From Guillardia theta CCMP2712 (Eukaryota; Protista; Cryptophyta), in the NCBI RefSeq assembly GCF_000315625.1, contig NW_005434671.1:348590-412589 (forward strand): a stretch of DNA of 64,000 nt, in the 5' to 3' direction. The notes beneath the pieces are model-generated. The model made no database searches, had not been told where the DNA came from, and worked only from the letters and a program-made list of their open reading frames with translations. Below are positions 12,567 through 54,510 of the stretch, piece by piece. Within the stretch, counting starts at the first letter, position 1; the number at the start of each line of letters is the position of its first letter. The position numbers and the translations under genes were made by a program.

Positions 12567-15500
12567 ATGTTGTCCCACACCATGGGCAGGCCGAGGCTTC
12601 CAGCGAAGAAAATATGCTCATCATGCCACAGACGACGAGAAATGACCAGCATTCGAAAGTGGCATGGTGTGTCTATGTGCACAACTTGTGTTGCAAGGTT
12701 GAAAAAACACAAGGATTGCAATGATCTTGAGCAGATCTTGCTCTCTCAATGGGATGATGCCTTGGTTTTCAAGCTGTTGGATTTCTTGCAATGCCATGGC
12801 CATGCAACTTTATCTGTGGAGTGTGAAGACGAGAATCTTTTAGTTTCAGCGACCCATTACCTCAAGTGGAGTCTTCGTTCTGTATCCTTGTATGAAGTCC
12901 AGAACAAACTAAAGGTCCTCGGAGATGTCTATGGGCCTACATCAGAAGGATTTTCGAGATGTTTTCTCCAGCACTACATGCAGGTTTTCGAACAACAAGC
13001 ATCTGGCAAATCACATGGAGGCACAAAGGCCATTTATGAGCACTTGAATCGACTTCGTACACGTATTGGCAACATTCACAGGAAGAATCGAAACCTTCTT
13101 TCTCGCATGGAAGAATGGTCTACTGCTCACTTCGAGAATTTGAATTCATTGCAAACTACTATACACGATTACTTTGTGAAGTAAGTCTGAGATGTTGCTT
13201 TCTTTCCATGCCAGTGACCTGACGATCATTGTACAGGTATGCAAGAATGTCGGATGAACATGTTGACACAAGTGAGAGTCTTCCAAACAAACATGCCAAG
13301 GCGCAATCCGAACTGTTCATTCAGACAGTCCTTGAAACTTTTAGAACCCTTGACAGCCACACCCGATGTGACATGATTAGAAGGATTATGAGTGAACACG
13401 ACTCTCTGTGTCAAACACATGACAAGAATACAGAGCATGAGCTATCTGCGATATGTAAATTCGAAAATGCTGTTTCAAATCTGCATGCTGCTGGATTGCC
13501 GGATATACTTTCGGAGTTAGTAATCTTTGCCAGAAACGACATCCAAGCTTTCAAAAGCACACATAGAATCATGCCTTACCTCGTCATGGATTGGTGTCAT
13601 CAGAGCTTCAGAGCGAAAGATTCGAGGGGCATGAGATTCTCTCCGGAGGTTTTGAGTTTCGCATCAACAATTCTCAATGTTTGCGACGGGAGTACGTTCC
13701 GTTTACTGTCAGGGCCAGGGAACAAGTATACGAGAAACTTCCATTCTGATCAGGCTTTGCATAACTTGCCTCTACCGTCCATATCTACTCTTCATAAGCT
13801 GCAGAGTGCAGACATGAAGACACGTGATCTAAACAAGTCAAGAATCTGCAGCGAGGTTTTGCATGATTACGGTGAAATGAATTTTAACCTTGTAGAAGGT
13901 ATTCATGTGTTGGCGATGGACAAGACGATGATCAATGCTGGGTTTTGTAAACAGTTCGAAGACTGCGAAGCAGATTTAGGTGGAGTCACGGGGAAAACAA
14001 TGGATTTGTGTGAACGGCTTGAGATGCGACAGAGACGGTTGGCACGGCTTTGTTTGGAGGGAACAACCGCTGAATCGATTCAGGAGCATGTGATAGGCTT
14101 ATTGAAAACTGACTTGGATCACATCAATGAAAGGAAATCAACGACTGAACGGGACTACAAGAAAATTCGTGATAAGTATGTTGCAAAAATGATTAGCAAC
14201 AACGCAGATACGAGAAGGAATGTCTCTAATGAAGTCAGGTTTACGCCACATCAATTGTACATGGCCGGGGTCATTGAGGGATGTAGTCAGATCCAAACTC
14301 AAGTGCCGCAACTGATTGATCGTCTGAACAACTACATCAGTACCGCCACACCAAGCGAGGACGAGCGGCGTTCAATTCAAGATGAATTAAATGTATACAA
14401 TGACTTGTACTACAAGACGGCGATCGCCGAACTAGCAGAAGATGCAATATGTGTGGTTGCACAGGATGGACAAAAGCATATGCCTCCTGCGCCTGTTTAC
14501 ATCGGCTTTGCCCATAAAAGTTTGTGTTCCAAAGATGGAAAGGATATTTTTTTAGCTGTCACCAATGAAGCTTGGAAGAGAGGCGTGAACTTCAATGTGT
14601 GGTCTTTCGATGGGGAGTTCGCCTGTATATATCGTTATTTCTACCAAGACAAGCCAAGTACATTCATTCAGGAAGTGAAAGCCATTAACAAGACTGCAAC
14701 CAGTATGGAATATAGACATTTATGTACATCTATTTCAGCATACATTTCGGGGATATTCAAGTTCGAACCTCCAATTTCAGAGCACGACATTGAGAGTGAG
14801 TGCACATTGGACCATCCAGATGAGTACGATGGTGATGATTTGTCGTCATTGCCCATCACACCTCAGCAAGGAATTGTACACATGGATGTTGCTGAGATGA
14901 GAGAAATTAAACAGTTTGTTTTGCAGTTACGACAGAACCAGGCCATATGGCAAGTTCAGAAGGAGAAGACGCTACGATGCCACACGAGGAAGAGGCCCAG
15001 AGCGACCCTGAAAGAGATGTTTTGCAGGTTTCAAATATTTTGCAGACGGTACGGATATGAAGAAGTTCTTTCATTGGCCAAGCACAATGAAGAGGGGGGG
15101 GAAACATTCACTCCTTGGGAGATGGAGCGAAGAATAGCTGATGGACTAAATGACTTTGATGAACACAAGATCCGCTTTAAATTCGACGAATGGTTATCCA
15201 ATCCCGTCCTCTCTCCAATTACGAACAAGTTGTTGTTTTTCTCGCCGTGCATCAATCACTTGTTGAAGAATGTCAGGCATTCCATTGGATCAGGGAAGTC
15301 TCAATCGTCTTCTACGGAAGCCCAGATATGGCATAAAGCTTACAGTGATATCGCCAAGAAGAATCCTGCTTGGATGACTCAGATGGAAGTCGACGGGACC
15401 GCCGATCCACAATCGGTGGATATCATGCTGAAGATGTTCAGTGACAAGGCCATCAGTCTACTAAAGGCAGAAGGACATGAAGCGACAGCAAGAATGGCAG

Positions 15501-16108
15501 AGGCTATGTCTGGCCTGCACAAAGCATTCGATGAAAGAGGGCTGAAAGTTTCAGAGAGGATACGTCTCGTTCAAGAGGGTCGAAGATGGCTATTGGAAGG
15601 CATCGACTGGACCAGTGTCAGCCAAAAACATGTCAAGGGACTATCATCTGTAACATTTGAAGGCTTCATAGTTGCAATTGATACTCATCTGCAAGTACAA
15701 CAGTATGTGAGGGATAAGAATCATGCGCTGGGTGATAGAGACTATGACTTCAATTCACGAACTCTCTGCACGGATAGTGTAGAGAATCTGTGGTCGTTGA
15801 TCGGCCATCTGAACAAGAAGGATTTTCTGAGAAAATTCAATCAGGCATGCATAGAATTATCTAAAAAGGTGGATCCAAACCTGCCTTTTGTATACGAGCA
15901 TTCGAAGAAGCGAATTGTCCTGAGCAAACCGCACGACCGTGAAGCTTTCAATGCACGGGATGGATCTGATAATGATGTGGAGCCACACAATAGTACGCAG
16001 AAGAACAATCGAAAGCGAGTATATGCTAAATCAGGGCAATGGGATGAAGGATTAACAGGTAATATGCAACGGTTCCGGGGATTGCGTAGCATTGCTGGCT
16101 GCAAGTAG
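12567..16108 (+). CDS. P-element/THAP9-superfamily DDE transposase-like protein, two exons (12567-13180, 13237-16108), ~1160 aa
   Basis: GTAAGT...TACAG intron 13181-13236 joins the two ORFs in frame. Motifs in P-transposase order: GMRFSPEVLSFA, LPSISTL, VLAMDKTMI (D1), WSFDGEF (D2), CINHLLKNVRH, DPQSVDIMLKMFS, ATARMAEAMSGLHKAFDERG, TLCTDSVENLWS (E). N-terminal CSSC...CTTC zinc finger. The start could also be 12516 or 12582. Confidence 0.8.
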
Positions 16109-16379
16109 AAAAAAGTACGTATTGTGGAAAATATTAAACACTGCTACGATGCAATTCAAATGATTGATACCATGATATAGATTTTACAATTTCCTGATAG
16201 GCTATGGTGGTTTCACGATTGTCATCATTGCACAGGCTGAATTAATCATCCTTAAACCTGGTCGCCGCCTTGCTGCCATTGCGATTTCCTGCAAACTCAC
16301 CCACCCCCTCCTGAAAAGGTACCCCCAAAATATCATACAAAAATACCGGTACTAGACCATTTTATTGGGAGTTCCTCCC

Positions 16380-17260
16380 CCGTGCCGACCCCCCAGCCGA
16401 CCCCCAGCCGACCCCCCTCAGCGACCCCCGGCCCGCCGGGCCGCGGCAGGACTCCCGGGACCCCGGGCCCTCAGCCCTGGACCGTACAACCTTGAACGGT
16501 CACCTCGGACCGGCGGACCGCTGGACCGATCGGCCGCGTAGTCAGACTCGCCAGGCCGGCCAACCCGCCGTGGGTGCCTATCATACTAGGATAGTATCAG
16601 TGCCACCGTGTGCCGGCAGAGCTGGCTAATTGACAGTGATGATCATCGGATGTTTGTGTGCCAATTGTGCCGGTAAATTACTGGCTAATTGATAGCCGAT
16701 TTCAGGTTTGATGATGTTTGTGTTAATTGCTGGCTAATTGATAGCCGATTTCAGGTTTGATGATGTTTGTGTGCCAATTGTGCCGGTAAATTACTGGCTA
16801 ATTGATAGCCGATTTCAGGCCTGATGATGTTTGTGTGCCAATTGTGCCGCCGCCGGGTAAATTACTGGCTAATTGATAGCCGATTTCAGGTTTGTGCCGC
16901 TTCCGTCGGACTCCCGGGAGCCGCGCGCCCGGCCCGCCGCGGCCGGAGGCCCGGCGCCGGGCCACTGATCATTGCTCAGTGCGGCTGCCCGGTACTAGGC
17001 TAGCTGGCAGTTAGTACTGCTCGTACTGATTTTTAACTTAACTTTGAGTAAACTTGGGAAGCAGTTAGTACTACAATGATGATGCCGTGCCCGAACCGTG
17101 CCGTGCATCGAACGGTGTGCCGCGCCGTGCGGCCCGGCGGCCGGGCCGCACTCAGGCTGCACAGTGGCGTGCCCCCGGCGGCCCGCATCTCAGTCCTGAA
17201 TTTGAAAGTACCGTGACCGCCGCTGAGACTCTCAGTACTAGTATTTGAAATTGGAACTGG
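16380..17260. repeat. GC-rich non-coding repeat element (CCGG/ACTCAG/CAGTG words) enclosing a minisatellite
   Basis: Same word composition as 342-620 and 44150-44630. Shares CTCGTACTGAT(T/C)TTT(A/G)ACTTAACTT (17020 vs 44531). GGACTCCCGGGA is repeated at ~16449 and ~16908. Confidence 0.55.
16622..16897. repeat. Minisatellite, 5 copies of a 49-71 bp unit containing the hairpin GGCTA-ATTGA-TAGCC
   Basis: CTGGCTAATTGA starts at 16622, 16681, 16730, 16794 and 16865. Unit CTGGCTAATTGATAGCCGATTTCAGGTTTGATGATGTTTGTGTGCCAATTGTGCCGGTAAATTA. The first copy is degenerate. Confidence 0.92.
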
Positions 17261-17329
17261 GAAATTGGTTAGGTTCTGTTTCAACAGTCGGAAGGCAAAA
17301 CGTTATAGAAGCCAGGAAATACGAAGGCA

Positions 17330-17771
17330 CAACAATGCGAAACGCTTACAGTTTGCTTGGAGCACATGTATGTGGGCCCGTACAACACACCCGTAACCAA
17401 GTACAGTAGTGTTAGTACCATTTTTGATAAATAGTATTATAGTTTTCGTACTTCCCCGAACAGTAGTAGCGCTTAAACCCTTTCCCTATTGTTCTATTTC
17501 TGGTACCAGTAGTCTATCTAGCTGTACCGTGCTAGGGCGGGTCAACTCGAGGGTCCCACAACAATGCGAAACGATGCTTGTTCCTTTGTGTTAAGAGGGA
17601 TGAGGGGTAGTAGGTTCCAGGGTAAGGTGGGAGGTAGGGTGGTGTGAAGGAAAGGAGGGGATGAGGGACACGCGAGCACATGAACTGGCCAGGAACAGAA
17701 ATGAACGGCAACAATCTGAAACGACGTGGATTGCCTTGCAAAAGTGTTTTGCCCCGCAACAATACCAATCG
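17330..17771 (+). repeat. Four dispersed direct copies of the CAACAATnnGAAnCG half-site
   Basis: CAACAATGCGAAACG at 17330 and 17559, CAACAATCTGAAACG at 17709, degenerate CAACAATACCAATCG at 17757. Confidence 0.75.
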
Positions 17772-21988: not shown

Positions 21989-23617
21989 ATGAGCTTGCAG
22001 CAGATCCTTCGCGAGCGAGACCTGGCAGGGAGAGTCTGGCCGGCAGATCGAGTCGTGATGGGCTCACGGGTAACCCTCGTGCTCCTGCTCCTCCTCGTGC
22101 TCCTGCTCCTCCTGCTCCTCCTCTGCTCCTGCTCCTCCTCCTCCTGCTCCTGCTGCTCGTTGACATTTCTCCTCCTCAACAGACTTGCAAGGCCCTCAGC
22201 AAGTTCTTCGCAGACGAGTGCTGGAGCAACATGCTGGTCTCCCTGCGAGCCAAGAAGAACGCGACGAGAGGAGCGCTCATGACAATGACCTTCCTTCCCT
22301 TCCGTTCCCTCGGCATCGCCGTCTCCTTCACGCGTCTCGCGAATTCCAAGTGGTTGCACCCATTCCAGGCTGCGGTGAAAGCGGCATCGAGCAAGGGGTG
22401 GAAGGGGGTGGTGGAGGTGCATGCTGACTTCACGGGCCTGGAGGACAGGCCGATGTCGGTCCTCACCGCCGTCCTCTCCTCCTTCCCCTGCTCTCTCACT
22501 GTGCTCAACCTCAGCTGGAACCAAATCTCCGACGGCGGGCTGCAGGAGCTCGACCACGTGCTGGCGTGCAACTCCAGCCTGCAGCAGCTGCAGCTGGGAG
22601 GATGCGGGCTGGGAGCTGAGGGAGTCAAGGGCCTTGCAGGCATCCTGAGGAGCGCGAGCTCCCTTGCGCATGTAGACCTGCACCACAACCTCATCGGGCC
22701 GAGCAGCATCAGGGTCATCGGGGAGGCGCTGGCGAGCAGAAGCATGCTGCTGTCGCTGGATGTGAGCGAGAACATGATTGGGTCCTGGGGGGTCGGCGAC
22801 CTTTTCTCTTTTCTCCCTTGCTCCGTGACAAGGCTCAACCTGTGGAACAACCGGATCCATGCCGAGGGTTGCCGGAGGCTGGCCGGGGCCCTCCCGCGCC
22901 TGGAGAGCCTGCAGTCCCTGACACTGAGGAGTAACGACATCAAGGACGCGGGTTGCAGCCTGGTGGTGAGCAGCCTGTCGAGGGGGATCAGGCACCTTGA
23001 CCTGCGGGAGAACATGATCACGGAGGAGGGAGCCAAGGCCATCGCAGAGAACCTGCCGAGCATGCGGAAGCTTTCCTGCCTGATGCTCGACACCAACCTC
23101 ATCGGCGATGACGGGGCCAAGCACCTGGTCCTGTCCCTGCCCTCCTGTTACAGTAAGTCCCTCATCCTCAGGATCACACAGCAGCATCTTTCATGTGCTG
23201 TGCTGTGCTGTGCTGTGCTGTGCTGTGCTGTGCTGTGCTGTGCTGTGCTGTGCTGTGCTGTGCTGTGCTGTGCTGTGCTGTGCTGTGCTGTGCTGTGCTG
23301 TGCTGTGCTGTGCTGTGCTGTGCTGTGCCGCACTTCCCTGCCTGCGTCTTCCTCTTCTCTGTCTCAGCGGCTGTCTACGTTCACCTCGATGGTTCCCACG
23401 TCCCATCGCACTCATCAACTTCTCTGGTTAATAGTCTTGACACATCACCACAGACCTCACAGACTTTCACTTCAGCAACAACGGGATCAGCAACCACCTC
23501 CACCGGATGCTCAAGGTCTCCATACAGGACAAGTGCAAGCTGCACGTCTGGGAGTTTGAGGAGCTCTTTGGTTTCAAGCACTCCTCCAACAACAACTTGC
23601 AGGACATCGTCATCTGA
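21989..23617 (+). CDS. RNI-like leucine-rich repeat protein (3 exons: 21989-22069, 22183-23152, 23454-23617)
   Basis: Repeats LTVLNLSWNQISDGG, LAHVDLHHNLIGPSS, LDVSENMIGSWG, LNLWNNRIHAEG, LTLRSNDIKDAG, LDLRENMITEEG, LMLDTNLIGDDG. GT-AG introns restore the frame. Confidence 0.85.
23194..23327. repeat. (TGCTG)n pentanucleotide microsatellite inside the LRR gene intron
   Basis: Seen directly. It generates spurious CCAVL/STAQH ORF repeats. Confidence 0.95.
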
Positions 23618-24150: not shown

Positions 24151-24477
24151 GTAAGCATCTCTCCTAAGCATCTCTCCTCTCCTCTCCTCTCCTCTCCTCT
24201 CCTCTCCTCTCCNNNNNNNNNNNNNNNNNNNNNNNNNNNNNNNNNNNNNNNNNNNNNNNNNNNNNNNNNNNNNNNNNNNNNNNNNNNNNNNNNNNNNNNN
24301 NNNNNNNNNNNNGCCCCTCCCTACTCCTCCCCCGGCCCCTTGCCCCCAGCCCCTTGCCTCTCCCCCCCCCTTCCGGCCCCACTTTCTCCATATCCCATCG
24401 TCCCTCCTTCCCTTCCTTCCTCCCTCGCTCCCTTCCTCCTTGAGTACTGAGCAGCAATGGATGTAGATTATATACAT

Positions 24478-27460
24478 TCACGAAACGTCATCGAATGCCA
24501 GGAGGGCGAAGCTATGGAGCCAGTGTGACCTGCCAAGCTCGCCAGTCAACACAAGTAGGAGAGCAAGTGCTACTGTCTGCTTTCCTCCCATCCCTCCCCT
24601 CCCCCTCCTCCTCCCCATCCTTCCCTCCATTTCGTCCAACCCGCCTGCTCTGTCCTCACCCCACGTAGCTCGGCGACAACCACTCCGCCAGCTGCACGTG
24701 CTCATCTGCTGACTCGCGCATCCGCGCGATGACTGGAGGAGCATATCAGATCTCCGAGTCAAGACGTCAAGCTCGACCTTGCGCCTCCACCGTCTTTGCT
24801 CCCTCGCACGACTTGGCGATGCCTCGAAGGTTCCAGGCCTGCCATGCTCGGGTTTCAGACGGTAGGAGAAGCTTCGTCTCGATTGCCTTGCTCAGCAACA
24901 GGCCGTCGAGGTGGCACAATCTTGCATCCTCTCTGTGATTCGCGTTAGAGGCGAATGGAAGGGAAGTGGAAGAAGAGGGAGATAGCGAGGCAGGGGCGGG
25001 AGGTCAGAAAAATTCAAGACGGAGGAGCAGAGGAGCGATGAAGAATAAGAGGTTCGAGGCTGATGAGCCAGAGGGAGGTGAAGGAGGGGGAAACGATCGC
25101 GAGTGCAGATGGAAGGAGAACCAGGGAGCTCAGAGGGAGAGGTCAAAGGGTGAGTCCAGAGTGGGTGAAGCTTTTCAGAAGCGTCGCACCGATCAGCAAC
25201 AACTGGGGGTCGAAGGATGCTGCAATCGCTGCTCGAGTCCATGAGAGAAGGGAGAAATTTTCTGCATGGGCCTTTGAGATCATGTTTTCAATGCACACGA
25301 TCTCCATCACCAAATTGGTTATCGTAATCATCAGCATATTTGACATCATCATCATCATCATCATCACCACCACCACCTCCTCCTCCTCCTCCTCCAATAT
25401 ATACACCATCTTCATCATGATCATCATAACACGGCACTTCCAACAACTAATCAATTACCAACATATTTCCAGAAACCACTCACAGTCACCTCGCCCATTC
25501 GACAAACTCCTCGTTGGGGAGGAGGCGCCTCATCATGTCCATCTCGCACAGCCCAGGGGAACTGAACAATATCGACATGCCGACATCAGGGTCAAGTCGA
25601 CTGATTGCAAAGGCGATACAGGAAGTCTTCGGCTGACGGCTCGAAATTGGGGTTGTAGTCCTCGTCGGCTGAGAAGATCCTCATGCAGGCTGCCAGGAGA
25701 AGATAGTGTCAGAGTTGCAGAGCTTTTAGAAGTTTAAGGAATCTTCTCTACAGCAAACAAGGCAGAGGCGTTTTACTTGTTCTGATTGCTTCCTCGAACA
25801 AATCGTCTCCAACAGCCCTTGCCTGCAAACCGCCATAAGCAATCTTTGAAACTTATCAAAGAACGGACTACGTAGTCAAGGCAGAGAATCAGGGAGAAGG
25901 CCGTTTGTGAGTGAACTCCGCTGCCTGCATAGTTTGGTCAGCACGCCAGGCATGAAGTGCTTGTCACGGTGCGGAGCGTAGGAGGAGGAAGAAGGGGGGC
26001 GGGAGGGGAAGGCAGAACGTTTGAACAGAATACTCACGGACTGGGTGCTTCAACTTTGGGAGATAGTCGAGCAGGAGCGATCTGATCTTCTCGGTCAATG
26101 GCTTCAACGCCTGCAGCGATGGAGTTTCAGCGCAGACGTGTGGGAGAAGGATAAAGGCAGGAGGAGCAAGTGAGTCGTGTGAAAGAGCATGTCTCTGATC
26201 GCTGCGGAGACAGACAAGAGGAGGTAACATGAAAGAGACTTCTGCACAAGGAGCACACGCAAGAGTCTTTCACATGCTCTACAGCCTTGACGCCTCCAAC
26301 CTGCCCACCTCCCCTCAGATCAAACATCACCTCTGCTGTCACCTCTCCCTCACCTCCCCGTCCCTGATTGGCACCAGAGCTGATTCTCCTGCAAGATGGT
26401 TGAGCGGCGGTTCCTCAGCAGCAGTGAAAGAAACCAGCAAGTTTCAGCAGCCAGCCCCACCCATAAGGTCGTCTGCAGCTGAATAGTGAATCCAACCAAA
26501 GGTGTCGGGACCGAGGACGAGCAGGAGAAGCCGCAGGAGCGGGAAACTGAGAGGAGCAGGGGAAAGAGGAAGGCAAGCAGAGAGAGGGGGAAGAGGAAGG
26601 GGAAGCAAGAGGGGGAAGAGGAAGGGGAAGAATGAGGGTCAAGAGGAAGGGGAAGAAAGAGAGGGAAGAGGAAGGGGAAGAAAGAGGGTCAAGAGGAAGG
26701 GGAAGAATGAGGGGGAAGAGGAAGGGACTCACTCGAAGGTTGAAGAGCCCTCACGATCAAAGTATCGTGATTCCTGCTAGGCATAAGGGCCGAAGAATCC
26801 TTCTGGGTGAAACCTGTTTGCATCCTTCGACGGTGATGCTGTTTAGGAGAGTACGTGAGACCTTTCCTGCAGGGAGAACAGCAAGGTTGAGAATTCGACA
26901 ATGAGCTGCTCTGCATGCACAGCATCTCACCAACGTCCACTTCATTGCCGTGCCGTCTTAGAATCCGCAGAAGGCACCTAGAGCACTGAATCGCCATGGT
27001 TCGCTAGAGCTCCAAGAAGCCCTCTCACCAGTGGCTGTGGACTGCACTATGCCAGTCGTAGTTGCCGCAAAACACAGGATGCAGAGCTTCCGGCGACTTC
27101 AACGGCCCGTCTACCGAACAAGTCACGCTGGTGCCGAACGCAACACGCTAACCAACCAGGCTGCAGCCAGAGATGGTCTACCTGAGAAGCCATGAGCACT
27201 ACAGTATTGCTTCCTGTTCAAACACCTTATGCGGATACTGTAGCCTCAGTCCTGATAGCGCCTGCCAAGCGATAAGTCATTGAGCTGGAATTGTTTTGAT
27301 GTGTATTAACCTGCTCCGCCATGGGCTTTGCCCAGTCTGAGCTGGCCTGCATGGAAGTATGCATTCTTTTGACAATAAATGGTGGTAAAAAGCTCAAGAC
27401 TTGGCAAGGAGCAACGAGCAGGGCAATTATGGGAAAAAACGCCCTTCTGATCCTCGACAT
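24478..27460 (-). CDS. DUF2891-family protein with N-terminal signal peptide, about 12 or more exons
   Basis: Spliced motifs LHPVFCGNYDWHSAVHSHWCLLRIL, RPYGWGWLLKLA, YLPKLKHPVR, GVHSQTAFSL, EPSAEDFLSPGLCEMDMMRRLL, HLDGLLLSKA and HWLHSFALLA match the DUF2891 pattern as I recall it. Confidence 0.85.
26589..26727. repeat. Intronic ~25-bp purine-rich minisatellite (AAGAGGAAGGGGAAGAAAGAGGGTC-like, ~5.5 copies)
   Basis: Seen directly. Confidence 0.85.
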
Positions 27461-27693
27461 TCCTTCTCACCACGAACTTGTTAGCTCAGAACATACAAAG
27501 AAATAGCGCTGATCAACTAAGAGGAGCGCTACATCAACCCGAATCCTCCCCCACTCTTGTTCTTCCCTCCCACCAACCCTCTCTTCCTCTGTCTACTGCT
27601 CCCTCGCACCTCCTATGCTTCCTCCCTCGCTCACCCCCCTCTACCCCATCTTGCTTGCCCCGCTTCCCCCTAATTTTTCAGGATCCGTGAAAA

Positions 27694-28925
27694 GCAACGT
27701 TTCATATTGTTGCTCTTGCATTAAACCTTATTGGTCCAAAACCTTGATCGATCCTCAAAATTTCAGACTTTACAGTACAATTTCCTCTGTTAATTTGAAT
27801 ATAAGAGATAAGCTAGGTAAACATTTGCATGAATAGGCAAATTTGCTGGTGAAGTTGAATTTAATTCGAAATTTTTTTTTGTGTACGTCTTCGTTAGTCT
27901 CGATTTGTTGATACGGGAGGTGATACGGAGGGGCAACAATGCGAAACGTTCTGTGTTTTGGAAACTTATGCAGAAGTGAAACAATGCAACGCTTCATATT
28001 GTTGCGCTCGCAAGCGCAGAACTTTGAACGACCCGGGCATCGTCAACCTCGTCGAGAAGCACAGCGACGACGTCAAGTGATATACGGAGGGGCAACAATG
28101 CGAAACGTTCTATGTTTCAGAAGTAAAACAAAATGCAACGCTTCATATTGTTGCGCTCGCAAGCACTTCCGATTATCGTCAACCTCATTCGAGAAGCACA
28201 GCGACGACGTCAAGTGATATACGGAGGGGCAACAATGCGAAACGTTCTATGTTTCAGAAGTAAAACAAATTGCAACGCTTCATATTGTTGCGCTCGCAAG
28301 CACGCTCGCAAGCACTTGGTTCTCGTCAACCTCATCGAGAAGCACAGCGACGAACGTCAAGTTTGTTGATACGGAGGGGCAACAATGCGAAACGTTCTGT
28401 GTTCAAAATGAAGAAAAAAACACAATGCTTCACATTGTTGCGCTCGAAGGTTTGTGTTCGTGGAGAACGCCGCGCTCGTCGTTGGAGAACGCCGCTCTTG
28501 TCGTGTTCGTGGTTGATACGGAGGGGCAACAATGTGAATCGTTTTATGTCTATTAATCAAATAACCCAACGTTTCGTATTGTTGTGTTTGCAATGCACCT
28601 GGCAGGACATCGACGACGTCAAGCTGCTGCTGCTCTTGGAGACGAGCCACGTCAAAACCTCGCTGCGCTCCCGTGTGTCTCGATGATAGGGGGCAACAAT
28701 GCGAAGCGCTCTATGTTTTAAATAATAGAATATGCAACGATTCGCATTGTTGTGCATCGAATTAACGCACCTCGATAACGACCGGTCGGCGATACGGAGG
28801 GGCAACAATTCGAAGCGTTATATGTTTTTGAATCTTATTATGATAAATCGCATCCTTTCGTATTGTTGTCGACCCCGTTCCCGGCCTTTATAGTATATCG
28901 CAATGCTTGGCATTGTTGCCCCCTC
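27694..28925. repeat. Array of 7 inverted-repeat (hairpin) units plus 2 solo half-sites
   Basis: Left arms (GATACGGAGGGG)CAACAAT.. at 27934, 28093, 28230, 28380, 28527, 28694 and 28803. Inverted right arms ..ATTGTTG lie 28-41 bp later. Solo right arms at ~27698 and ~28904. Confidence 0.93.
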
Positions 28926-29431
28926 GTGCCATGCCATGCGCAACAACTGGCTACCCTACCCTAGCATTTTCCATATTCATTCTGTAGTGCATGAGGGTGG
29001 GTTATCTCGGGCTAATGTCTAGGAGTGAGGGCGATGAACAGGTTACTGTGTGAAGGGTATGAGGGGTATGAGGTAGGGGTATTGGGCTGAATGAGGGGCA
29101 CCGGAGTCGAGGATGTAAATGAAGCGAAGTTTCTTAGAATGATGACAGGACAAACAAGGACCGGGAGGCAGGAGAGGTTGAGATGGTGTGGGAGGGGAGG
29201 AGAGAGTCTGAGACGCGGGGTAGACTATCCACGAGCCAGTCCCTTCTTGATTCTGCTCCTGTGGCGTCCGCACAATGGGTGGACTGTGAGCTGTTTTTGT
29301 TGATGGGATTCGAAGAGTCGAGCAAGGCTGGGGTGTGTGTGAGAGAGGGGATGTGTGTGTGTGTAGGGGGGGGGGGGGGAGACGGAGAGAGAGAGGACGG
29401 AGGAGACGGAGAGAGAGAAAGAAAGAGACAG

Positions 29432-29435
<4 letters not shown>

Positions 29436-29508
<73 letters not shown>
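29436..29508. repeat. (AG)n microsatellite
   Basis: Seen directly. Confidence 0.95.
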
Positions 29509-29511
<3 letters not shown>

Positions 29512-30188
29512 AAATAGAAACTTCACCTTCACAAGAATGATTGAACAATTCGTACTCCAAATCAGCTGAACATTATGATACAAGAATTGGCTATGAGTGT
29601 GTTCTTTGAGGAATCATTAGCCATGTATGATTGTTGCTTAGCGACGAATGCAGCCCGATTGAAAACAACGTTACATCCATGCTCTTCTTACAATGATGCT
29701 CCTTGATCGCCTTGTTCTGATGATTGGGCGCGTTCTAGATGCTCCCCTGGGATCACACAACTTTCAAAGCAGCAGCTCTCCTCATGATCGGTATCTTCCT
29801 TCTCACGTCATTCCTGGAGGTACTCTGCTCCCCCCCCTCCCCCCCTTGTCATGCCTGATCATTCGTCACCGCAGTCTTCCCTTCCTCTCCCAGGGCGCGG
29901 GAATGCAGCAAGCAGGGCTCGTTCCGTCCGATCTCATCAGAAGGGTCTGCAGGACAGTCTCAACGCCACCCATGCAGAGGTTGGGAAGGGAGGAAACAGC
30001 ACCAGAACCACATAATTGCTCCATGTACATTTAAGCGAACAAGGGCGCAGCGAGCCAGCGGTCGGAGGGAGCGTTCGCCGGCGATGCGTGCCAACATTTT
30101 CTTTCAACGTTGGATTTTGGCGATGCAATCTTGTCTCGATCTGTACCTGTAAATTGAAATGTACATGCTCCCTCTCAATGCTCCCCCC

Positions 30189-31724
30189 TCAGCCGTTCCT
30201 GCTCGTGGTGATGCTGTTGAAGTAGCCCATCTCGTTCCTAGCGTAGATCCTCTTCAGCCGAGCCGTGTGCCCAAGGACCTGGTTTGGCTCCTCGAGGCTG
30301 GAGGGAGGGAGGATACCGTTCATCCTCAACTCCCTGGTCACGAATGAGTCTCGGAAGGACAGCCGACTCCTCTGCTTCTCGTCAGCACCATCCCATCTGT
30401 CCTCGGGGATCCGGTCGTCCGTTCCCTCCTTCCCGTTCCCCATGTGCACTTCTCCAGTCTGCCTGCCGAAGCTCGTCCATTCTCGGACTGTCGAAAAGTT
30501 GAGCAGGACGCCGTCTTGGTGGTTCGCCTCTGCCTGCTGCGCTGGCTCTGGCAGCGCAAGGTCCGGCAGCCCTGAGCCACTCACGCCGGACTCGTGCGAT
30601 TCACCTGGAGAGCCAGTGGGAGGCAGGAAGGGGTGGGGCTGACTCGGAGGCCCTACAGCACGCAGGAAAGCATGCTCATCTGCAGCGTGAAAAGTCATGA
30701 ACTCAGTAAAATTTTGCCCGTTCCGTTCTCCTCCCTGCACGTTTGGGCAGAGTCAGTGAGTGCAGGCTTCATTGCAAGAACAGAAAAGCACAGTCCTTAC
30801 CCCCAAATCATGCTGGCAAAGCTCATATTGTCCGAATCGCCCTGTCCTGTAGCAATGCTCAACAGCAGGGTTGACATCCCAGCAAACTTTGCTGATGGTC
30901 TGGGAGCAAAAAGTCAATCAAGGAGGGGACAAAGCATGAAGAAAGACTCACTCCGTTGTTCAGCACCTTCACGATTGTTCCAACGCCTCCTCCTGATATG
31001 TTGAGCAGCCTTTCATCGAAAGCTTTTGATCCTTCCGATGACAGAGTCACCCTCATCCCCTTGAACGCCTTCACTGAGATTCCAACGATCCTCTGCGCCA
31101 TCCTGTCCGTCATCGACATGGAGTCATACCATGTATCCCCCTGCTCCACCAGCTGAACCATCCATTCCGACTTGGGCCGTTGAGGAGCGTCGCCTGGCAT
31201 GGCCCCGTTCTGGGATGCCTCTTTCGCTGCTTCGCGGGGCCTCTGAGTCCCTTGCGAGTCGCTGTGGACGTCCTGCTGCAAGCCAGCGGCCGAGGCATGG
31301 GAGCTTCCACGGACCTCAGCTGGAGAAGATCTATCAGAGCCCTCGTGGTCCTCCCGTCGGGGGAAGAGAGGCTCTGTGTCAATGTGGAATGGGGTGGGGA
31401 AGGGCGTGCCGCATTGGGCGACGGAGTTGCGCTGGGGAGTGGTGCTGTCGAAGAGAGTCTCGACTGTCAGGGTGAAGGGCTTCTTCTTCCTTGCTGGCGC
31501 CGGCCTCCTCCTCGAGTTCCGCAGCCAGCTACGCAGGGAGGCGAGTAAGGAGCGGAGGGGATGTGGCATGTGACTTGGGCTTACCTGGCCAGCGGACAAC
31601 ACGAGCTCCTCCTCACAACGGATGGGGGGTCTGCTTGCTGATCTGCCTCAGTGCCCTCGGTCCTGGCTACGTCCGCATCCTGTGCTGCTGGTTGTTCAAC
31701 ATCTGGAACTACCTCTTCCGACAT
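30189..31724 (-). CDS. Hypothetical multi-exon protein with a Mib/HERC2-like SH3-fold domain
   Basis: MSEEVVPDVEQP start. GMRVTLS...GGGVGTIVKVLNNG|TISKVCWDVNPAVEHCYRTGRFGQYEL resembles the Mib_herc2 pattern G-RV...GTI...V-WD...Y--G--G-YDL. The 3' end is uncertain. Confidence 0.55.
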
Positions 31725-53617: not shown

Positions 53618-54510
53618 TCTTCTTTTCCATCGCTCCACTATCTCTTCCGTTCATTCCTCTTCTTCCTCCCCTCTTCTCCTCCTTCTCTCCTTCGTCCTCT
53701 CTTGCATTCTAATGTAGGATCTCAGCCTTCTCCGAGGATCGCACATTTACTTCTACGGGGTCGGGGAGACTCGCCAGCTTGCCGCTCTCCTCGTGTCCTG
53801 GCTGCAGCACAATCGCTCGATGCCTGTCCTTGCAGACGGTTTCGATGCAGCTGCATGCAAGGGAAGGGCAAACGTGTCATGGAGGCCCCTCACTCCCTCA
53901 AGTCACTTCGACTTCCCCGTCGAACAGGTCCGGCTCCTTCCTCCTCCTCCTCCTCCTCCTCCTCCTCCTCCTCCTCCTCCTCCTCCTCCTCCTCCTCCTC
54001 CTCCTCCTCCTCCTCCTCACGCCATCGCCAGCATGACATCCACATTCTCCACCCGTATGACCCGGGCTCCCTCCATGAGGCAGCCATGGCTCATCTCCTC
54101 CAGCGATTCGCCTCCGGCCAGTCTGATGTAATCTGGCATCGCCGACCTCCTGCCAGCGATCGAATGCTGGAAAGTGATCACATGGGAACCTACAAGATGC
54201 TCTTCGCTCCTCCCGTCCTCCGACTTTCTCCCCAGCTTGCCTCCTCCTCGGTCTCCCTTGCACCTTCCACCTACATCCTAGTGACAAGGTCCTCAGGTAC
54301 ATCAAGAATGTCTCCTCCTCCTCCACTACTTGACCTTTCGCGGGAACATCGCACGACAACGTCTGAAGCGCTGGCGCTCCAACCAGAATGCGAATCGAAC
54401 GGGTTCACTTGAAACTCTTTCTTTATGACAGAACCAAAATGCGTTGACTTGCAACAATCAACCCTCGTTCTATTTCTTCTTACTTACAACTGGCGTAAAC
54501 TCCCGAGACT

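Follow-up and report, generated by a model that had tools for sequence, protein, structure and literature searches.

The 64-kb window (the whole stretch of DNA that was analysed) is Guillardia theta nuclear DNA. RNA and DNA reads were aligned over 25500–31400 (5,901 letters), and two of the runs were recognised as RNA because their contigs are spliced. The left gene lies on the minus strand, contains 14 CT..AC introns and begins with an ATG at about 27460; the 5′ end of its transcript contigs is at 27465, and its product has a signal-peptide-like start. The right transcript runs on the plus strand from about 29521, just past a GA microsatellite, and carries a GT..AG intron at 29818–29872. These opposed spliced transcripts place an array of paired inverted repeats (27697–28919) in the 2-kb spacer of two divergently transcribed genes, on their promoter side. 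The array is flanked by a C-rich tract (27466–27696; minus strand, on which it is G-rich) that adjoins the start of the left gene, and by a G-rich tract with GGGGTR motifs and the GA microsatellite (28931–29520, plus strand) upstream of the right spliced transcript. Both tracts are G-rich on the sense strand of their own gene, and GGGGTR motifs split 4:0 in the right tract and 0:2 in the left one.

RNA contig depth was 0 across 27470–28454, while both neighbouring genes were covered. Within the array, contig cover came from one contig only, which matched about 38 nt up to 28492 and was then unlike the window. One or two raw RNA reads fell on 28455–28848, which may reflect weak transcription.

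Architecture of the array

The window was searched with the half-site CAACAATRYGAADCG, allowing at most two mismatches. This gave 21 matches against 0.76 expected, a number reached in none of 100 shuffles. Sixteen matches lay at 27698–28918 and four at 17330–17771; the remaining one, at 54383 with two mismatches, is probably due to chance. A pattern search over 27697–28919 reproduced the layout given in the preliminary description, namely seven hairpin units and two solo arms that together make 16 half-sites. The spacers described for units 1–7 (41, 31, 31, 31, 28, 29 and 36 bp) agreed exactly, as did the unit periods on remeasurement (159, 137, 150, 147, 167 and 109). CAACAAT, which had been called invariant, was present in 16/16 arms of the array, and the leader said to persist, GATACGGAGGGG or a near variant, stood ahead of 7/7 left arms.

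The array opens with a solo right-type half-site (27697–27713, minus strand, on which it reads CAACAATATGAAACG), located upstream of the left gene, about 240 bp from its ATG. It is followed by an AT-rich first linker of about 210 bp (27714–27921) with no homologue in the window. All seven units lie on the plus strand and consist of leader, left arm, loop and right arm; without the leader, a unit extends from GCAACAAT through ATTGTTG(C/T). Unit 1 occupies 27922–28005 with its leader GATACGGAGGGG (27933–28005 without) and has a 41-nt loop. Three units with 31-nt loops come next: unit 2 (28081–28154 with leader, 28092–28154 without), which is a recent duplicate of unit 3 (28218–28291, 28229–28291), and unit 4 (28368–28441, 28379–28441), the best folder on the minus strand (z −6.7). 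Within linker 4 (28442–28514) there is an internal duplication of 22 bp as well as a stretch of about 38 nt (approximately 28455–28492) common to an expressed gene elsewhere in the genome. Unit 5 (28515–28585 with leader, 28526–28585 without; 28-nt loop) forms a weak hairpin, unit 6 (28682–28753, 28693–28753; 29-nt loop) carries the leader variant GATGATAGGGGG, and unit 7 (28791–28869, 28802–28869; 36-nt loop) forms the weakest hairpin. Both capping half-sites that had been described as solo were present, but the last is not a plain solo site: it is an inverted left-type half-site on the minus strand (28903–28919; 28902–28930 with its own leader) that pairs with 28794–28819, making a 26-nt inverted repeat (81%) with the left arm of unit 7.

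The consensus arm is (G)CAACAAT-NN-GAA-N-CG-TT, about 17 bp long or about 28 bp including flanks, and occurs in two inverted copies per unit with a variable spacer of 28–50 bp between paired arms. Twelve core positions were invariant or nearly so across the 16 sites. GAA was kept in 15–16/16 array arms, CG in 14–15/16 and the following two T in 14/16 and 16/16; by position, G10, A11, A12, C14 and G15 were each present in 14–16/16. Left-type arms carry the leader GATACGGAGGGG and the tail TTCTATGTTT, and right-type arms carry the flank GCGCTCGCAAG and an inner TGCAACG. The left and right arms are two distinct subtypes, so each unit is polar.

Duplication history of the units

Linkers 1–3 had been regarded as recent tandem duplicates, and Tandem Repeats Finder bore this out (period 137–150, 83–85% matches), recognising the array only in units 1–4. 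The later linkers had been called largely unrelated. They were indeed near shuffle level, but linker 5 keeps GACGACGTCAAG of linkers 1–3, which indicates that the older units were probably born by the same duplication. An ACGTCA/CRE-like 12-mer is retained in linkers 1–3 and 5.

The patch of about 38 nt in linker 4 is at least 95% identical to a transcribed gene elsewhere, and its loose end at 28492 was seen in an RNA run and a DNA run. Linkers 1–3 and 5 are open and GC3-rich in one plus-strand frame, and linker 4 is so on the minus strand, which suggests that they include patches of coding DNA. The linker 4 patch indicates that some of the linker diversity arose by replacement rather than slow decay, and this tempers the case for long purifying selection on the arms at this locus. 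Self-BLAST of 26000–30500 against the window returned microsatellite matches only and no in-window source of the linkers, and the translated array ORF at 28270–28686 had no match in a protein search even at E ≤ 10. The array probably grew by tandem duplication of a unit of about 140–150 bp (right arm, linker, leader, left arm and loop), with units 5–7 old and units 1–4 young; the linkers would have changed afterwards by indels and at least one patch captured from another gene.

Conservation, covariation and folding

To compare arms with linkers, mean identities were taken over units 4–7. The left 15-mer (0.88), right 15-mer (0.80) and leader (0.88) were well kept, whereas loops (0.63 versus 0.55 in shuffles) and linkers (0.48 versus 0.44) were close to shuffle level. 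The arms therefore did not diverge at the rate of the linkers. The conservation profile was saddle-shaped, with arms above loops and the left arm (0.92) above the right arm (0.85). The earlier suggestion of iterated protein-binding sites, hr-like repeats or mini-MITEs was in the right neighbourhood. Selection had been proposed to act on both the arms and their geometry; the first part was supported and the second was not, since arm centre-to-centre distances varied from 43 to 56 bp in the array and from 43 to 65 bp in other lineages, with no helical phasing. The idea that the 31- and 41-bp spacers differ by one helical turn was also dropped, as one insertion in unit 1 accounts for the 10 bp and the remaining spacings are unphased.

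These identities bear on the reading of the array as a neutral minisatellite, in which a chance palindrome was multiplied by slippage without constraint. Units 1–4 are clearly recent tandem duplicates and linker 5 retains the 12-mer of linkers 1–3, both of which speak for this reading. However, the arms stayed at 0.80–0.88 while loops and linkers fell to about shuffle level, the arm occurs in 5–6 other lineages and never in prokaryotes, and further copies exist in the G. theta genome (both described below). The retention of the arms and their recurrence in other organisms thus argue that the array is not a neutral minisatellite, a reading that is largely refuted and that we hold to be very improbable.

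Covariation was assessed on an alignment of 16 hairpins from six lineages, six from the array and ten from the other lineages. The stem covariation score was at shuffle level (0.094 versus 0.091), with 205/500 shuffles scoring as high, and paired cells made up 79.1% of the alignment compared with 78.0% after shuffling. The variable arm positions 8, 9 and 13 were unpaired in 9/16, 5/16 and 11/16 hairpins, respectively. Fold z-scores ranged from −0.6 (unit 7, minus strand) to −6.7 (unit 4, minus strand) with modest minimum free energies, and the stronger folding strand was the minus strand for units 1–4 and the plus strand for units 5–7. Unit 5 scored −2.4 on the plus strand and −1.7 on the minus strand, and unit 7 scored −1.8 on the plus strand. 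No Rfam family was matched at the gathering score, and at E ≤ 10 only sub-threshold miRNA models appeared, the best at 27.8 bits against a gathering score of 99. Invariant letters beside freely varying, non-compensating positions point to a sequence-specific protein site on DNA rather than a structured RNA.

The preliminary description had also raised a polycistronic hairpin-RNA precursor, miRNA-like or siRNA, whose mature product would be the better-kept left arm. The saddle-shaped profile with its higher left arm, the good folding of several units (z −4.6 to −6.7), the weak Rfam miRNA-model matches and the one or two raw reads on the array are what such a precursor would be expected to show, and clusters of the animal mir-430 and plant MIR395 types share with the array tandem hairpins, conserved arms and diverged loops and linkers. 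The array differs from those clusters in that covariation and a transcript are absent, stability is uneven and the strand is inconsistent: units 5 and 7 fold about as well as shuffles, and the better strand flips among units. In addition, the stems are about 15–17 bp with fixed mismatches around loops of 28–41 nt, contig depth is 0 over most of the array with neighbours covered, and elsewhere the arm stands single or as direct repeats. We therefore consider a hairpin-RNA precursor very unlikely, though marginally less so than the minisatellite.

A second cluster of half-sites

A looser cluster of four half-sites, all on the plus strand, lies at 17318–17771, and the first of them has a left-type leader. 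These half-sites (17330–17771) are 1.2–1.7 kb downstream of a 959-aa ORF (13229–16108) that had been called a P-like transposase and proposed to act on them. The ORF shares 99% identity with GUITHDRAFT_113559 of Guillardia theta CCMP2712. It matched no Pfam family at E ≤ 0.001, THAP and Tnp_P_element domains included, and no PDB relative at E ≤ 1, and its homologues were only G. theta proteins without Pfam domains.

We then compared the ORF with its other copies. The copy on JH993032.1 shares only 13466–16385 of the window, a 2.9-kb block at 99.1% whose ends are sharp and do not form inverted repeats. The half-sites begin at 17330, about 950 bp beyond this block, and none was found within 10 kb of the JH993032.1 copy (22.5 kb) or of a 57% paralogue (21.9 kb). 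The end of the block and the half-site-free copies make the neighbourhood of ORF and half-sites look coincidental. That the arms are binding sites of this neighbouring "P-element-like" transposase is suggested by the short distance between them; given the ORF without a Pfam or PDB match, the block that ends short of the half-sites without terminal inverted repeats, and the copies lacking half-sites, we find it scarcely credible.

Occurrence of the paired arms in other genomes

The paired arms were sought with an exact pattern that required both arms 20–50 nt apart. In IMG/VR and in bacterial and archaeal genomes totalling 596 Gb, the latter serving as an empirical control, the pattern had no match. 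It occurred at 14 metagenome loci from lakes and seas, in 5–6 groups, where our own estimate of the chance expectation was about 1. Because the invariant arm positions were fixed in the scan, conservation at those positions in the metagenomes is by construction, and the set is biased to exact arms. All 14 loci extend the palindrome by C-G at both sides, beyond the demands of the pattern. Judged by 14 metagenome loci against none in the prokaryote genomes and IMG/VR, the metagenome matches are neither chance nor prokaryotic. In most lineages a second short motif, CGAAC, 3–5 nt, CCCG, adjoins the arm.

Group B loci (L002, L003/L009, L010 and L014) are eukaryote-like, with microsatellites and without dense ORFs. 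They share one element of about 250 bp, present at four or more loci with unrelated flanks and built like the beginning of the G. theta array: a solo right arm and an 85-bp linker, then a single left-loop-right unit or two of them. In its left arm, GGGCG CAACAATCCGAAACG CTCC, the likeness to the left arm in G. theta goes beyond the fixed positions. The right-arm flank of the element, CGAAC..ACCCG, equals the flank beside a second copy of the unit 7 left arm in a G. theta DNA contig. G. theta DNA contigs join unit 6/7 sequence to flanks from outside the window (loose ends at 28734 and 28802), and since the CGAAC..ACCCG flank is absent from the window, further copies must lie elsewhere in G. theta. 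In group A (L001/5/6 and L008/13) the element exceeds 600 bp and has two different left flanks, one of which, abutting the element, is a histone-fold, H4-like ORF truncated at about codon 20; at another locus one right flank has a copia RNase H-like motif, as read from the ORF translation.

Two further types of genome (L011 and L012) are mutually unrelated, virus-like, gene-dense and intronless, with almost no Pfam or PHROG matches, and the domains that do match are of eukaryotic type. The L011 genome encodes a zf-MYND domain (1e-20) and a weak, sub-threshold VapE-like helicase match, and the L012 type encodes a U-box protein. The L012 type was found in 61 blocks of the metagenome collection, on contigs of 23–27 kb and once 50–200 kb. 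In searches with their proteins, the L011 helicase-like protein had few relatives (2, then 6), a 695-aa protein of the L012 type had none in IMG/VR, and three virus-like ORFs had no usable protein-atlas match. For a relative with 38% identity to the L011 helicase, a 12-kb piece of its contig lacked the arm, which counts against the mobile-repeat reading given below.

In the L012 type the arm occupies two intergenic regions. The first, close to the end in several independent contigs, holds the palindrome and a direct copy, and the second holds two 58-bp direct repeats, 120–190 bp upstream of an ATG and about 70–130 bp upstream of a TTTAAAT box, in contigs whose gene starts are uncertain. L011 has, among iterons of 25 bp, the palindrome as well as two 96-bp direct repeats that precede the MYND gene by 117–213 bp. 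The half-site is also found singly and as direct repeats away from the array, and its local duplication recurs in every lineage seen.

These upstream positions bear on the main rival reading, a selected host cis-regulatory or origin module that is truly hr-like. The arm would be an upstream element with a direction, serving a DNA-binding protein that belongs to the host or is shared with viruses, the inverted pairs would serve both divergent genes, multiplicity would be selected as in enhancers or iterons, and dispersal would be a by-product of promoter duplication rather than transposition. The array between head-to-head genes and the direct copies upstream of the L012-type ATG, its TTTAAAT box and the L011 MYND gene are consistent with such a module. 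So are the GGGGTR tracts polarised to each gene, the four plus-strand sites of the second cluster with their plus-polarised tract, the tandem duplication of the site in all lineages and the CRE-like 12-mer kept in linkers 1–3 and 5. Against it, the 64-kb window has the motif in only two of its intergenic regions, 44 kb of G. theta DNA from elsewhere lacks it, and the gene starts in the virus-like contigs are uncertain. Moreover, what moves in groups A and B is a block of 250 to more than 600 bp whose flanks are unrelated, and in one case a histone gene is disrupted. We regard a selected module of this kind as rather unlikely, yet the strongest competitor. It does not exclude a mobile repeat, because mobile elements are known spreaders of binding sites.

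Discussion

Our leading reading, on which our confidence is evenly poised, is that the array is a dispersed, probably mobile palindromic repeat with putative protein-binding arms that has been tandemly expanded here. The family would be non-coding and palindromic and would belong to cryptophyte-type eukaryotes, and the array would be a locally expanded copy. Dispersed copies, as expected of a MITE, were found in the two clusters of the window, the junctions in the DNA run, group B at at least four loci and group A at at least two. Mobility itself is something we infer from the differing flanks only, because neither a transposase nor a target-site duplication, an empty site or clean terminal inverted repeats turned up. 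Specifically, no consistent target-site duplication was seen at the array ends or at the group A and group B junctions, a weak negative given how few and diverged the copies are, and no partner transposase was associated in the window or in the metagenome loci. A possible terminal inverted repeat of 9–14 bp around the group B element is weak and comes from reading the alignment.

Similar to MITEs, the G. theta family is short, non-coding and palindromic, with conserved ends, a variable interior and unrelated flanks, and it shares with them promoter-side positions, occurrence in virus-like genomes and tandem expansion. In contrast to MITEs, the arrays and group B elements have one and the same arm, directly oriented, at both ends, and the core is common to lineages of 45–65% GC, which is unusual for a MITE family. 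The subterminal transposase-binding repeats of hAT, CACTA and P elements also comprise many copies of a short motif in both orientations within a few hundred bp. The array differs from these in having no element body or termini, in a motif of at least 15–17 bp, and in that the sole nearby transposase-like ORF is not associated with it.

Several other identities were considered and set aside. A snoRNA cluster was dropped because conserved C/D boxes are absent. For Introner-type introns, chance alone would supply the leader GT and right-flank AG, unit 6 lacks the AG, the coding-like frame of linker 4 is on the other strand, and no spliced RNA was seen. The arm shows what we take to be partial resemblances to the RFX X-box, SOX AACAAT, THAP GGGCA and the Stowaway end CTCCCTCCGT, none of which suits all units. 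An integron-attC-like or CRISPR-like arrangement of repeats and captured spacers was rejected because of the shortness of the linkers, the duplicate origin of three of them and the lack of a nearby recombinase or nuclease.

A dimeric activator binds the palindrome halves of baculovirus hrs, whose repeats serve as enhancers and origins. The array resembles hrs in its tandem direct repeats, each with an imperfect palindrome whose arms are conserved and the rest variable. The arm family likewise occupies several places in intergenic DNA, with two sites in each virus-like genome. It differs in lying in a cellular algal chromosome between spliced genes, in its long and variable arm spacing (28–50 bp) and in the absence of sequence similarity to hrs.

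Under the mobile-repeat reading, a trans-acting protein would read the arm sequence on DNA. This binder may be a transposase or recombinase, or a regulator common to virus-like elements. If active in the spacer at all, the array would be a homotypic cluster of 16 binding sites, like a viral hr or enhancer-origin repeat. A bolder proposal is that the arm is the site of one conserved DNA-binding protein common to cryptophyte-type algae and virus-like genomes, and that host arrays serve as enhancers, origins or infection-responsive switches. The arrays would then be cellular counterparts of hrs in bidirectional promoters, seeded by viruses or swapped with them. We offer this shared-protein proposal as speculative and consider it improbable.

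To our knowledge, little is known of cryptophyte cis-elements, origins and DNA transposon ends. The arm is long, near-invariant and common to a model alga, uncultured eukaryotes and two virus-like genomes but not prokaryotes, and it is therefore a ready bait for its binder. Should the binder prove to be a transposase, the family would be a mobile element of an unusual, palindromic kind whose arrays form in promoters. Should it instead regulate genes or initiate replication, the arrays would be the first hr-like elements known from the nucleus of an alga and would link control of host and viral genes. In both cases the array would be neither an RNA gene nor part of a P-element system.

Coding-like sequence within the array linkers

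We examined the linkers, the stretches between successive units of the palindromic array. In linker 4 (28442-28514), a patch of ~38 nt at ~28455-28492 was also present, at ≥95% identity, in an expressed gene at a different place in the genome. The same contig, run-on sequence included, was recovered from one run of RNA and from another of DNA. Read on the minus strand, this patch gave ..FSNDERGVLHEH.., and it looks like coding DNA captured within the array. Linkers 1-3 and 5 (28005-28092, 28154-28229, 28291-28379 and 28585-28693, respectively) were open on the plus strand and GC3-rich (0.66-0.83), with ..DDVK common to their plus-strand translations. Each of these four linkers also carried ACGTCA, which resembles the core of a CRE or of the plant histone hexamer. 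They may represent either an old coding patch or a second binding site.

A spliced transcript to the right of the array

A spliced plus-strand transcript with high coverage was detected at 29521-30246, with a GT..AG intron at 29818-29872. It contained no convincing ORF and overlapped the 3' end of a minus-strand ORF (30189-30740). This transcript may be a non-coding RNA whose transcription is driven from the side of the array.

The 2.9-kb block and other repeats in the window

The 959-aa ORF that the preliminary description had read as a P-element-like transposase is contained in a 2.9-kb block (13466-16385) with 99.1% identity to a copy on JH993032.1 (GUITHDRAFT_113559). The boundaries of the block were sharp, and no inverted ends were present at them. 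The 959-aa protein had no match in Pfam or PDB, had a paralogue at 57%, and was found in an MMETSP transcriptome. The ORF is a repeated, expressed gene. The sequence immediately past the right end of the block (16676-16894 and 16384-16530) contains a 49/64-bp tandem repeat, present in 2-2.5 copies with 88-97% matches, as well as short repeats rich in GC. Elsewhere in the window (23194-23328 and ~24230-24330), a perfect (TGTGC)x27 microsatellite occurs within long ORFs, as does an N run, an assembly gap seen as X in the ORF translations.

Related elements in eukaryote-type metagenome loci

In lake-metagenome contigs of uncultured eukaryotes, including L001 (956-1276) and L008 (1181-1519), one copy of a related palindromic element adjoined a histone-H4-like ORF that had lost its N-terminal tail and carried a 1-nt deletion, and a different copy of this element adjoined a copia-type RNase H fragment. 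At locus L010, two inverted copies of a ~65-bp sequence (2026-2090 and 2535-2597) bracketed the group B element, and a third copy lay nearby (~1600-1637); this sequence is a further repeat family around the array.

Virus-like genomes bearing the arm, and a related contig

The L012-type genome, one of two virus-like types bearing the arm, was found in 61 blocks of the collection, with contigs of 23-27 kb and, once, 50-200 kb. Its contigs (L018-L023) were gene-dense, had 61% GC and lacked introns, and several independent assemblies ended ~100-500 bp apart, just past the palindrome. The encoded proteins included one of 2,117 aa, one with a U-box and a third, of 695 aa, that is multi-pass membrane-like; almost no other product of this genome was recognisable. 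A 36.8-kb contig (L024) encoded a 38% relative of the helicase-like protein of the other type, L011. Two more proteins encoded on it were a 739-aa protein with a MYND finger and one of 6,100 aa or more. This contig adds a further member to an uncharacterised lineage whose domains are of eukaryotic type.
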